Positions 58,627-63,764 of a DNA stretch of 64,000 nucleotides are shown here, piece after piece (position 1 is the stretch's first letter; every line of letters begins with the position of its first letter). The notes under the pieces were generated by a model. It was not told the DNA's origin. It saw only the letters and a program-made list of their open reading frames with translations, and did not search any database. Made by a program: the position numbers and the translations under genes. Source of the DNA: Phaeosaccion multiseriatum (lineage: Eukaryota; Protista; Ochrophyta, other classes); the NCBI GenBank assembly GCA_965112735.1, contig OZ218953.1, forward strand, positions 1,798,001 to 1,862,000, in the 5' to 3' direction.

Positions 58627-59055
58627 GAGAAAAAATATCATGACTTGCCTCTTGACGAAATTAAGGCGGATGAAGATAAAAGGGCGTCAAAGGGCGTCGT
58701 CAAAGTGCGTCAAACAGGGCAAAGTGGGTTCAAAAGTCGTCAAACGTCTTCAAAAGTGCCACTCAAACCGTTTTTTTTTTAGTGGTTTTTTGGTGCCTCC
58801 TCGCTGGATTGTAACCGTCATCCCATCTCGTAGCTTCTTGTATCAAGTTGTTGACGTGTGGGTCTCTACATTGAGACGTTGCGGAAGTCATGGAATCAAT
58901 GAGGGTGGCGAATTTACCTCAGCTGCTGCTCGCGTAGAAAGACAAGGCGATGAGGGTGTCTTTTCGCCAAGAAAGGAGGAGGTTGGACAGAGGCCAAGAA
59001 CGAGATCCTTGACGCGGTTTGGAGGAGGAGGATAGGAGGAGGGAGAGAGGGCAGG

Positions 59056-61107
59056 ATGGAGAAAGTGGGGGCCGGCCCGACGTGGAAACAGAACCTCAAA
59101 AGGAAGCTCGCTCCGCGGAGAGTCTACGAGAGCATTTCCGCCCTCTCGGCCAGCGGGAGGTCGGGCGGAACGGGGCAGGGATCGTACCAACGAGCGTCAG
59201 AGTCCAAGGGGGAGGGATCAAGCCAACGAGCATTAGAGTCAAAGGGGGAGGGATCGCTTGAACGAGCATCAGCGGCCGGTGGCAAGCCCGTCGGTGGCCC
59301 TCCAGATGCGCAGCAGCAGTCCCGGCAGCAGCGTGCCTCTGTGGGTCTGCTTTCTTCATCTTTGGGAAAGCCTTCTGCCATCGTCAAGGCCCGATTAGAG
59401 AAGGCCGCCTCTACGAGTATGTTCTCAGTATCGTCGTCTAGAAGCCTCAGAAGTAGCGCAGCCGAGAGTGAGCAGCAGCCGCAGCAGCAGGAAGCAAAGC
59501 AACGGGTTACCCCTGGACGCGGAGTCATTACAGCCGGAAGCAAGACTGCAAAAGTGGTGGCGTCAATAGCAGGAGCGACTCGAGGACTAGGGAGCTCCCG
59601 ACGCGGTGCGCCAGATCAAGACGGCGATGGCGCATCTGTCGGAGGGGCCTCGGCGGTGTCTGCCGTGCCAAGTTACGATGAGCTAGACGTGCTTACACAA
59701 GGATGGACTCTGAACGAGATCTCCTGTGACACAGAGGCCATGGCCGCCTTTCAAAGGTACATAGAGGTCAATTTTTGTGAGGAGTCGCTCAACTTTCTCC
59801 GAGCTGTACGCGAGTACCGGGGAGCGCAAGCGCTGTGGTTGGGATCTGTACCTGCAGCTCTGGAGGCGCAAGCAGACGTAGCGGCCGAAGCAGCGGCCAC
59901 AGCCGCCACAGGGGGCATGACAGCAGTGGGGAAGAAGACGGGAGGCGACGCGAATGCAGCATCGGCAGTAGCAGCAGCAGTGCCACCACTGGCAGCGGAG
60001 GGAGAGGAGGAGGAAGCACCGATCGAAGCAGACGGGGAGGCGAGTAGCAAGAGAGCTCGACGCTACGGAGCGAGGTCGCCATGTGAGATAAGCTTGGCGC
60101 GAGTTCTCTCGGCAGCGGCCGCCAACACCGTCCTGGAAGCGAACAATTCAGAGGCGGTAGCACCAGCACCAGCACCAGCACCAGCAGCACCAGCACCAGC
60201 ACCAGCACCAGCACCAGCAGCAGCAGCACCAGCAACACAAGCGGCAGCAGAGCCAGCAGCAGGAGCCAACACCAGCCTTCCACGGAATAGTTCAGAGGGG
60301 GTAGTATTAGAACGCTCGTTGTCACGGTGGACGACGCTGCGAAGCACCAAAGCCGCAGCTGGTGAGCAGCAGAAAACAAAGTCCATGGGCTGGTCTGCTC
60401 TGATGCGAAGGGCTCACACAGCACGCTCAGTGCTGCCAGTCGACGGGCCTACGAAAGACGATGAGGAAAAAGAAGAGCAAGAAGGAGAGAGCAAGCCGAG
60501 CAAGTCTCCTCCCCGCCTCACCGCCTTGTTGAAGTTCAGACACGCCGCCTTCATGGCCATCGTCAGCGAGTACGTGGTGACGGGTGGTCGGAACGAGGTG
60601 AACATTGGAAGCAGGGACCGCAAGGGTGTGCTTCGGTATACGAATAGTCATGGCTTCTGCTTGCTGTCCACAGAAGAGCAGCGGGCAGTGTTCGACGCGG
60701 CAGCTGTCGAGATTCATCACATGCTCGAATCCAACTGGCTCACGGAGTTTCTGCAGACAGAGGAGTTCCGTCAGGCGGTGATGAAGAGCAGCAACAGCTC
60801 CCCATCCACCGCAGAACCGCCACCACCAGCAGGAGCAGGAGCAGCAGCAGCAGCAGCAGTTGCAGTGAGCCCACCCAGTGGCGGCAGCAGTGCATCAAGC
60901 AGCTCTGCGGCCACAATTGTCGCTGGACCCGGCCCTGGCTGTAGCGATGACGCACGGAACCATATCTCTACTCCGTTGCAAGGGGAGGGCAAGCTCAACT
61001 CGGTAGGGCCCGACGGGCATATCTTCGGGTCTATCGAGCAAAACAAGTCGACCATACCAATTATCGCGAGCGGCAAAATCGTGGACGAGATGCATTGTTG
61101 GGAGTGA
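59056..61107 (+). CDS. RGS-domain protein (split RGS), single exon, 683 aa
   Basis: LNEI..AMAAFQRYIEVNFCEESLNFLRAVREY and IVSEYVVTGGRNEVNIGSRDR..VFDAAAVEIHHMLESNWLTEFLQTEEF. Confidence 0.85.
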   Translation: MEKVGAGPTWKQNLKRKLAPRRVYESISALSASGRSGGTGQGSYQRASESKGEGSSQRALESKGEGSLERASAAGGKPVGGPPDAQQQSRQQRASVGLLSSSLGKPSAIVKARLEKAASTSMFSVSSSRSLRSSAAESEQQPQQQEAKQRVTPGRGVITAGSKTAKVVASIAGATRGLGSSRRGAPDQDGDGASVGGASAVSAVPSYDELDVLTQGWTLNEISCDTEAMAAFQRYIEVNFCEESLNFLRAVREYRGAQALWLGSVPAALEAQADVAAEAAATAATGGMTAVGKKTGGDANAASAVAAAVPPLAAEGEEEEAPIEADGEASSKRARRYGARSPCEISLARVLSAAAANTVLEANNSEAVAPAPAPAPAAPAPAPAPAPAAAAPATQAAAEPAAGANTSLPRNSSEGVVLERSLSRWTTLRSTKAAAGEQQKTKSMGWSALMRRAHTARSVLPVDGPTKDDEEKEEQEGESKPSKSPPRLTALLKFRHAAFMAIVSEYVVTGGRNEVNIGSRDRKGVLRYTNSHGFCLLSTEEQRAVFDAAAVEIHHMLESNWLTEFLQTEEFRQAVMKSSNSSPSTAEPPPPAGAGAAAAAAVAVSPPSGGSSASSSSAATIVAGPGPGCSDDARNHISTPLQGEGKLNSVGPDGHIFGSIEQNKSTIPIIASGKIVDEMHCWE

Positions 61108-61570
61108 ATCATGACGGCGCTGTGTGGCCAGCGAAAGAGCAGGGGCGTTCAATTTTTGTAATCAGAATGAATCACACGCACGCACGCGCGCACACACACA
61201 CACACGTGCTTATTCTTCTCATAGCCGCTGCCTGGAGATGAGACCACAAGTCCCCACCCCCTGTGTGTGATTGGGAGGCTACGATACCATGCAGTAGCCT
61301 GCTCAGCCTGCTCGACAAGTGAGAGCATCGCGCATACGACCATGCTGATTGAGGAGGGCAGTGGTGGGAAGGCTCGTGACATGAGTAGTACACCAAACAA
61401 ACAGAACCCCCCCACTCCGTGTGGAGAGGCGGCGCACAGAGTTATACTACATATGCTTGCGCCCATTTCATTTTTTTTTATAATCAATGAACTGCAAAAT
61501 ATATATGTACACATCTCTACTTCTAACATGGCGGAGAAACGCACGACTACCGTGACAGCCAGGGTGCACG

Positions 61571-61650
61571 CGTGTTTGTGTTCAGCCTTCGAGCAGGGGT
61601 CTCCCCTTCGAGAATTCCTTTATCGCTCCAAGGCGTCATTTCCAAGCACG
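61571..61650 (-). promoter_or_regulatory. Eukaryotic SECIS element (type II-like) in the 3' UTR of the 62390-61998 gene
   Basis: Minus strand reads cgtgcttg gaa ATGAc GCCTTGGAGCG at AAA ggaattctcgaaggggagacccc TGCTCGAAGGC TGAa ca caaacacg. Helix I has 7/8 pairs, the core is AUGA/GA, helix II has 10/11 pairs, followed by unpaired AAA and an apical ministem. Confidence 0.85.
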
Positions 61651-61997
61651 GGCCGGGGTTGTAGGCAAGCCAGCAACACACGGTAGCCAAATGGGACTGA
61701 AGCCGGGACTGAGACGAGACGAGACGAGAGAAAGGCTGCCTACCCACGGGAGGCAATGCCCTCTCTCTCCTCCTATTCATCGTCCATCCATCCCATCCTG
61801 TCAAATCGTCTCCGTGTGTGCTGTGTGTCGTAGTCGTCTCATCTCGCCGTCTATATACAGGGGTCCATGGGCCAATATGGACGACAAAGTCGCCGAATCA
61901 ACGCACGTGTTAGGGGTGAAAGATGTGGGGAGAGGGGGAAGGAGAGATTTCCGTAACAGAAACTCCACCTCTTCCCTTCCTTCCCCCTTCCATCCTT

Positions 61998-62390
61998 CTA
62001 ACACGCGCTCGGTCCTCAGCTTCGCTTGGGAGGCGCAGGTAGATCCTTCATTCCCTTAATGTTAGACCCCCTTCGCCCTCCACCTCCGCCCCCCCCGCCC
62101 CCTCCACCCCCTCTCCGTCTTTGTGAGCTGTCGCCCCCTCCGTTTCTTCCTCCCTCTCGCCGCCCACCGACGTTAGAGGCAGCCATCACGACACTAAACA
62201 CTATCAAACCGGTCGCACCAAACCAGAAGAAGGACGCTGCTCCAGCTACACCAGCATAAAGGGCAGGCACCTGGAAGCCCGCCAAACCGACCGTCTTGTT
62301 CAAAAAGCCGAGGGCCCCTGGGCAGGGCCCCCCTCCTCCTCCACTAGAAGCGCTGTCCTCCACCACGACGCCATTGACGATCCTACTCAT
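61998..62390 (-). CDS. Small membrane selenoprotein candidate (SelK/SelS-like architecture; Sec at TGA 62018-62016), 130 aa
   Basis: [12 protein letters not shown].., a hydrophobic segment, then a Gly/Arg-rich tail [36 protein letters not shown] lies about 365 nt downstream of the TGA on the same strand. Confidence 0.78.
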
Positions 62391-62431: not shown

Positions 62432-62543
<112 letters not shown>

Positions 62544-62755: not shown

Positions 62756-63764
62756 ATGGCCTGCTGCCTCATCTGCTTCAAGGGAGATCCCGTGCCGGAC
62801 AGCAAGTATGGGGAGTACTACGGGAACCCCAACGAGTTCCAGACCGGCATGATGAAGGCGCCTCTCAAGAACCCGCTCTGGTTCCTGGGCGGCTGCCTCT
62901 GTTCGTGCTGCTCCCAGTGCTACCTGCGTAAGCGTCTGCTCGAGCAGGACATGACGAAGTACATTTGTTGCCAGGGTTACTTCCGGTGCCCGTGTGGCAA
63001 CTGCTGCACGCCCGGCGAGATGAAAGAGCAAGACTGCCCGACGTGTTGCCTATGTATTGAGAGCTTCTGCTGCTTGAGCTGTGCGGTGGCAGCCAACAGG
63101 ATGTACACGTGAGTTCTCACTGGGGAAATGTGTGGTACGCGACAGGTTGGAAATCGTCGAATGGAGCAAAGAGCTGGAGTAGTATCTTTGGGGGGGAATG
63201 GAAGAGGACTTGTGGGGCTTCCATTCTATCACCCTCTCACTCTGCCCCCCCCCCCCTTCCCCTCTCTCCTTCTCTCTCTCCTTTCTCCCTCTCTCTCTCT
63301 CTCCTTCCCTCTCTCTTCCCCTCTCCTTTCTCCCTCTCTCTCTCTCTAGCATGGACAAGTACCGCCTCGTGCCGGACAAGTGGGACAACCGAATCATCCG
63401 CTTCAACAACTTCTTGCAGGTGCGAACGCGTTGGGGTAAATTAAGCGCCACCTACATTGGTATTAAGTCGAGCCCTATGTTGTGGTATAGGGGTGTGGTC
63501 CCAGTGGTGCTGAAGACCCAAACCCTGTTCCCTTTCCCCTCCCACACTGGTTCTTCATCTCACGTACTTACTTCTCACCTTTCCCTATTGCACGCACTCA
63601 CGCACTCACCCTTCTTCCACCTCCTCTCTTGTTGTTTCTTGTGTGTCTCCTATCCTGCCCAGCTTCTGTCTTGCATCTGCAATATTCTGGCCGCCTTCGA
63701 GCCCAGTTTCAGGGAGGCCGCGCGGATCATTGATATCATCGCTGAGATCGTCTTCTACACGACG
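62756..63764 (+). CDS. PLAC8-family cysteine-rich protein; 3' partial
   Basis: CLCSCCSQCYLRKRLLEQDMTKYICCQGYF..CPTCCLCIESFCCLSCAVAANR..DNRII..LSCICNILA. Exons 62756-63108, 63350-63419, 63663-63764; the gene continues past the window. Confidence 0.85.

Follow-up and report, generated by a model that had tools for sequence, protein, structure and literature searches.

A small open reading frame (ORF) on the minus strand of Phaeosaccion multiseriatum DNA appears to stop at a TGA codon, and the question raised by this locus is whether that TGA terminates a small membrane protein or is translated as selenocysteine (Sec). A preliminary description of the window, by which we mean the whole 64-kb stretch of DNA analysed here, had read the locus as a hidden selenoprotein. 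The comparison with relatives leads to the same answer, as 16/16 homologues carry the TGA and most of them possess a SECIS element with compensatory changes in its helix, and thus what looks like the stop codon of this gene for a small membrane protein is almost certainly a selenocysteine codon.

Results

The reading frame continues past its TGA

The minus-strand ATG at 62390-62388 opens an ORF of 124 codons (62390-62019, minus strand), which is closed by the TGA at 62018-62016; the 14 relatives that phmmer retrieved can be aligned with it over its full length. Past the TGA, the frame reads GGA CCG AGC GCG TGT, namely five extra sense codons for G-P-S-A-C (62001-62015, minus strand), and then meets a TAG at 62000-61998, the candidate true stop. 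That the ORF runs on through GPSAC to a TAG had been described before, and the coordinates were reproduced to the base. The ORF encodes an N-terminal motif, a low-complexity spacer, the sequence F-L-N-K-T..G-F-Q-V-P, a membrane helix (residues 43-79, approximately), a tail rich in Gly and Arg, and a conserved stretch. The TGA would encode residue 125, and the terminal Cys of the extension is the proposed partner of the Sec.

An exact look-up of the window protein in public assemblies returned no record, and the sequencing runs that contain the window DNA are genomic and of flat depth. No tRNA gene was found within the 64-kb window. For P. multiseriatum itself, Sec insertion at this codon is what we infer from the sequence.

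As to the neighbourhood, a (CT)n microsatellite (62436-62535, about 100 nt) is located 46 nt upstream of the selenoprotein ATG, between this gene and a divergent Cys-rich ORF of 118 aa (62756-63112, plus strand) that has no Pfam match. On the other side, a convergent ORF of 683 aa (59056-61107, plus strand) contains an RGS domain (Pfam E 3.8e-9), and its stop and the end of the SECIS element are about 470 nt apart, therefore the 3′ UTRs of the two genes face each other. Between these two genes, a CA/GT-rich simple repeat occupies 61163-61211, and public assemblies break there.

The TGA is conserved in an unnamed family of relatives

A word-indexed protein search with the ORF as its sole query gave zero matches. 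An exhaustive phmmer search against 1.84 billion representatives gave 14 matches (E 2.4e-9 to 8e-4), nearly all of which end within two residues of the query's end; profile searches added further family members, and a metagenome scan added six loci. Word-indexed searches with alignments retrieved family members only, with no SelK or DUF4605 protein at E<=10. The 16 other distinct loci so found come from Heterosigma, Tribonema, MMETSP transcripts and marine metagenomes, and share 25-46% identity. The named sources are Heterosigma akashiwo (NCBI 'unnamed protein product'), Tribonema gayanum and the MMETSP transcripts. All the database copies of the family are unnamed, and so is the nearest ESM Atlas cluster, which has 175 members, mostly from diatoms.

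The relatives have in common an N-terminal block M-[VS]-[KR]-I-V-N-G-x-[VI]-V, a conserved G-[FY]-x-[VI]-P ahead of the membrane helix, a Gly/Ser/Arg-rich stretch, and the sequence N-I-[KR]-G-x-x-D-L-P-K-P-P, in which D-L-P is invariant. Behind this sequence, TGA stands at the equivalent position in all 16 relatives, that is, at the same alignment column in 17/17 distinct loci when the window is included. It is followed by 2-16 in-frame sense codons per locus, which would place the Sec 3-17 residues from the end. In 16 of the 17 loci the sequence extends to the true stop, one being cut off, and this stop is TAA in 11 and TAG in five, but TGA in none. Homologues with TAA or TAG at this position and no SECIS, a contrary case named in the preliminary description, did not turn up: the TGA is there in every relative, and in most it is accompanied by a SECIS whose helix shows compensatory changes. 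A homologue with Cys in place of Sec was likewise not found among the relatives. Gene callers and database entries end every copy at the TGA.

The transcript of Heterosigma akashiwo (L012:604-1135) carries the TGA, after which 16 codons follow, none of them for Cys; the N-terminus is rich in Cys and devoid of the I-V-N-G block, and the NCBI record annotates a product of 82 aa only.

Almost every locus places a Cys close to the TGA

A Cys lies within seven residues of the TGA in 16/17 loci, in the arrangements U-C, U-x4-6-C, C-U or C-x5-U, and this nearby Cys is missing only in the Heterosigma copy. The Cys-bearing extensions of the relatives read G-S-S-P-C, G-P-N-M-C, G-A-S-P-C, A-G-R-S-C, G-P-A-S-N-C, G-P-S-P-C-S-V-L and G-P-G-P-G-A-C, and also C-A (in two loci), C-R and C-V. 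When a Cys is missing from the extension, one is found directly before the TGA in three loci (L004, K-C-U-G; L019, S-C-U-R; L022, G-C-U-G), and in one further locus six residues ahead of it (D-L-P-C-D-P-K-V-G-U). In L022, positions 497-517 read P-A-G-C-TGA-G-P, and the contig ends ahead of the stop.

The pairing of Sec with a Cys, which the preliminary description had suggested from the single sequence, is thus backed by conservation. Because the partner Cys is conserved, an intramolecular selenenylsulfide, as in SelS, is likely by analogy. The C-terminal Gly-Cys-Sec-Gly of thioredoxin reductase, situated on a flexible tail, forms a selenenylsulfide of its own, and the adjacent Cys-Sec of L022, L004 and L019 is like this tail, the G-C-U-G of L022 matching the redox-tail tetrapeptide of the mammalian enzyme. 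The algal proteins differ from thioredoxin reductase in that they have no flavoprotein domain, carry the tail on a membrane anchor, and mostly have the order U-x4-C or U-C.

A SECIS-shaped element with a covarying helix lies downstream of the TGA

At 61571-61650 of the minus strand, where a SECIS had been reported, we find a SECIS-shaped element of the type II shape, with its core at 61639-61581, from an AUGA at 61639-61636 to a UGAA at 61584-61581. Helix II is formed by 61634-61625 pairing with 61594-61585 over 10 positions with one G.G mismatch; the AA motif (61621-61620) sits within an unpaired GAUAA, and the apex has a mini-stem GGGG/CCCC. The core is adjoined by a C.U juxtaposition, with helix I on the outer flanks. 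The AA motif lies 14 nt past the AUGA, slightly further than in the classic SECIS pattern.

When both strands of the 64-kb window were scanned for the AUGA/helix/AA/GA pattern, two matches were obtained, where shuffles of matched composition gave 0.7 on average, and one of the two is on the same strand as the ORF, 379 nt downstream of the TGA. The other, a short one at 58950 of the plus strand (AUGAGGGUGUC...), is found immediately upstream of the RGS ORF, and no ORF ending in TGA is evident upstream of it; this SECIS-shaped match probably arose by chance. The Rfam model SECIS_1 did not report the window element even at E<=10, nor did any of 14 family loci reach its gathering score. The one SECIS match that the Rfam scans gave is the element of a relative (L002), which aligns to the full SECIS_1 model with 14.1 bits, against a gathering score of 35.

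Across the family, 13 loci have an AUGACG...(C/U)UGA stem-loop 70-420 nt past the TGA, and a fourteenth, L011, shows the 5′ half of a SECIS at its contig end. As MAFFT alignments of the SECIS elements were gapped inside the helix, core-anchored pair counts were used instead of a covariance model: 12 elements were anchored on their AUGA and UGA cores, and the pairs were tallied by script. Helix II positions 2-11 are paired in 77% of cases in register, versus 32-41% with the partner slid by 1-3 nt, and each position shows three to six different standard pair types. Pairing with the own partner occurs in 92/120 cells versus 55.8 when partners are permuted, and 0/20,000 permutations were as high, while the SECIS 5′ arms are only 26% identical between loci. 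Several of the relatives are transcript contigs (MMETSP and RNA assemblies) with the coding sequence and the SECIS on one molecule, and therefore the SECIS is in the mRNA of those organisms.

The element of Heterosigma (L012) is unusually long, with about 115 nt between its cores. Two loci with ample 3′ sequence gave no convincing SECIS, one (L013) with zero AUGA in 650 nt and the other (L019) with an AUGACG at +178 for which a partner arm is not evident; these two may have a non-canonical core or an intron in the 3′ UTR.

A strong hairpin follows the UGA directly

A stable hairpin, a candidate Sec-redefinition element (SRE) similar to SL1 of SelS, starts 9 nt past the UGA (61905-62006, minus strand). 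It spans 102 nt with a folding energy of -48.6 kcal/mol (z -2.63), and 0/200 dinucleotide shuffles fold as well; its outer stem GCGUGUUAG/CUAACACGU spans the last two sense codons and the TAG. Weak miRNA-like Rfam matches at 61900-62010 were set aside, as they merely reflect this hairpin. Most relatives have an equally placed hairpin, starting 4-10 nt past the UGA, that is unrelated in sequence. Over the 80 nt past the UGA, the mean z is -2.37 (n=16) versus 0.03 in controls, 93 windows taken from these loci (Mann-Whitney p 5e-6).

The SRE of SEPN1 is a stem-loop a few nt 3′ of the Sec UGA that raises recoding efficiency. The algal hairpin resembles the SRE of SEPN1 and SL1 of SelS in beginning a few nt 3′ of the Sec UGA, whereas it is kept as a structure rather than a sequence, and covers the extension and the true stop. 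In the SelS mRNA, the ORF-proximal stem-loop stimulates insertion of Sec only when it is near the UGA (PMC3628699), and by this analogy, the algal hairpin probably helps Sec recoding.

The protein is predicted to hold one membrane helix and a disordered tail

The product had been described as a small membrane protein, in agreement with its 130 residues and the helix at residues 43-79 predicted by AlphaFold2 from the family alignment, where the pLDDT is 88-91 in the blocks covering residues 41-70 and the mean pLDDT is 64. In the same model, the N-terminus forms two short β-hairpins of low confidence, and the tail is disordered except for a short helical turn at 115-117 within the D-L-P motif. 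Neither a Foldseek search of the model against AFDB Swiss-Prot nor a shape search in the ESM Atlas gave a meaningful match, and a profile search of the PDB gave nothing relevant. Because the tail is strongly basic, it would be cytosolic under the positive-inside rule.

Sub-threshold matches point to both SelK and DUF4605

The window protein itself has no match to Pfam SelK_SelG at E<=10 and none to DUF4605; its only Pfam match, FoP_duplication, was dismissed as meaningless. Among the relatives, three match SelK_SelG (PF10961) below threshold (P0009, 18.4 bits, E 0.0034; P0008, 15.5 bits, E 0.028; P0026, 15.5 bits, E 0.027) over the tail and the terminal part of the helix (positions 26/36-84 of the 86 in the profile), and none of about 25 members reaches the gathering score of 23.3 bits. 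Four other relatives match DUF4605 (PF15378) below its gathering score of 27 bits (P0012, 15.1 bits, E 0.02; P0025, E 0.066; P0002, E 0.11; P0023, E 0.32), over the membrane segment (profile 26-57 of 59). In language-model features, which serve as leads only, two independent members have DUF4605 as their closest named Atlas cluster (0.77, 0.81), while a SelK_SelG cluster is absent among the 100 nearest Atlas clusters of two members.

The preliminary description had judged the protein to look more like FAM241/DUF4605 than SelK. The likeness to DUF4605 stands at the level of a lead, through the closest named cluster and the four weak Pfam matches; its precedence over SelK is offset by SelK_SelG matches on three tails that are equally weak (E 0.003-0.03).

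Discussion

We consider it highly probable that this is a real selenoprotein gene, in which the UGA is decoded as Sec under the direction of a SECIS, and that it belongs to a conserved ochrophyte family with a Sec/Cys tail at the membrane. In the mechanism that we propose, the mRNA would encode a single-pass membrane protein of 130 residues whose codon 125, UGA, would be read as selenocysteine; this decoding would be directed by the SECIS about 380 nt downstream in the 3′ UTR and probably assisted by the strong hairpin that begins 9 nt past the UGA. The family appears to be one of ochrophyte (stramenopile) algae, characterized by M-x-K-I-V-N-G, one membrane helix, a Gly/Arg-rich tail predicted to be disordered, and D-L-P, with C-termini that would combine the Sec with a Cys close by (U-G-x-x-x-C, U-C or C-U). 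To judge from SELENOS and SELENOK, the basic tail most likely reaches into the cytosol from the ER membrane, where the Sec/Cys pair would cycle between the selenol/thiol and the selenenylsulfide forms, and the product may then be a membrane-anchored redox tail of the reductase/peroxidase type.

Two readings of the TGA that involve no selenocysteine have to be weighed against this one. Were the TGA an ordinary stop, the protein would end at Ser124, as every gene caller and database entry has it, and the SECIS-like hairpin and the GPSAC would be coincidental, in line with Rfam calling no SECIS. However, an ordinary stop is unlikely because a conserved 'untranslated' peptide with a Cys is not expected behind one, and it also leaves as coincidence that TGA is present in 17/17 loci, yet in 0/16 visible downstream stops, and that the SECIS covaries to a degree matched by 0/20,000 permutations, which makes this reading very improbable in our view. 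Readthrough of the UGA by a near-cognate tRNA (Trp, Arg or Cys), stimulated by the hairpin, would yield the extension without Sec, and a hairpin 4-10 nt past the stop, as found in most members, is indeed the usual layout of programmed readthrough. However, such readthrough would not need the downstream AUGA/GA kink-turn stem-loop that 13 loci have, the exclusive use of UGA and the neighbouring Cys suit Sec chemistry, and the comparable proximal stem-loop of SelS promotes Sec insertion (PMC3628699); we therefore give very little credence to this reading. The decoding of the UGA as Sec is thus the reading retained below, where its family is considered.

The protein is a genuine SelK/SelS-type membrane selenoprotein. 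As to its kinship, it may be a SelK that has diverged, a relative of FAM241 that bears Sec, or a bridge between the two families, and we file the gene under neither. A highly diverged stramenopile orthologue of classical SELENOK, rather than a separate family, is the less likely interpretation, with several points in its favor. The N-terminus of SelK, M-V-Y-I-S-N-G-Q-V, resembles M-V-K-I-V-N-G, and the three sub-threshold SelK_SelG matches agree in position. The organisation is also the same: like SELENOK, the algal protein is small (~95-130 aa) and single-pass, with a disordered tail rich in Gly, Pro and Arg and basic in charge, a Sec few residues from the C-terminus with Gly behind it, a 3′-UTR SECIS and no CxxU, and both occur almost only in the Sec form, as reported for algal SELENOK (PMC7539508). 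Moreover, SelK is hard to detect by homology, which is poor even among close organisms (PMC3753652), and the diatom T. pseudonana was reported without SelK (PMC2375036), a gap that the algal family could fill. On the other hand, all of about 25 members stay under the Pfam gathering score (best 18.4 vs 23.3 bits), DUF4605 and not SelK_SelG is present among the 100 nearest Atlas clusters of two members, and the membrane helix begins at about residue 43 and not about 20, behind a longer segment of about 40 aa with two predicted β-hairpins; the invariant D-L-P is a further difference from SELENOK. In addition, the Sec of SelK is third from the end and without a partner Cys, forming an intermolecular diselenide (PMC9344019), whereas the algal family keeps a Cys near the Sec, pointing to an intramolecular Se-S bond. 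SELENOK and SELENOS themselves are grouped by organisation, not by sequence, namely by one helix, a Gly/Pro-rich cytosolic tail, a terminal Sec and no CxxU (PMC9344019).

Between its helix and its tail, SelS has a coiled-coil/VCP-interacting region, for which the algal protein of 130 aa has no room, and no sequence similarity to SELENOS was detected. By analogy, the algal proteins are like SELENOS in that a Cys lies close to the Sec and a hairpin follows the UGA, where SelS has a conserved stem-loop. SelS crosses the ER membrane once and has a basic, disordered tail, in which the penultimate Sec188 forms a selenosulfide with Cys174 (PMC3628699); it differs from the algal proteins in its length of 189 aa and in a Cys-Sec spacing of 13 residues, compared with 0-6 in the algal family. 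FAM241 proteins consist of a conserved N-terminal block of about 20 residues and a conserved one-helix segment, are about 120-130 aa long and ER-associated, and were reported absent in unicellular eukaryotes (PMC11880036). The algal proteins resemble FAM241A/B in this two-block layout of an N-terminal block and a helix segment, whereas FAM241 stops just past the helix and includes no selenoprotein, and the algal tail adds 50 residues. It is conceivable, if rather doubtful, that the algal family represents a unicellular, Sec-bearing relative of the animal orphan family FAM241, with the N-terminal block and membrane segment of the latter and a Sec tail like that of SelK, and that FAM241, SelK and the algal family form one ancient superfamily of ER membrane proteins, in which FAM241 descended from a membrane-anchored Sec/Cys redox ancestor by loss of the tail.

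Surveys of algal selenoproteomes found SELENOK among the least widely distributed selenoproteins and described three new families, none like this one (PMC7539508); the literature that we searched, which cannot prove absence, held no description of the present algal family.

In conclusion, this work reports a genuine, conserved and currently unannotated family of membrane selenoproteins, built like selenoproteins K and S with a partner Cys. The ochrophyte algae, a group that includes the diatoms, where classical SelK was reported missing, thereby gain a conserved membrane selenoprotein family, whose copies are all cut at the Sec codon by annotation pipelines and left without a name. The occurrence of U-C, C-U and U-x4-C on one scaffold provides a natural series for the redox chemistry of a flexible Sec/Cys tail at the membrane. 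The family-wide hairpin after the UGA adds to SelS a second case of a local structure that may aid recoding where the Sec lies few codons before the real stop. If the weak links to both SelK and FAM241 are true, they would hint at what an orphan family of human proteins does.
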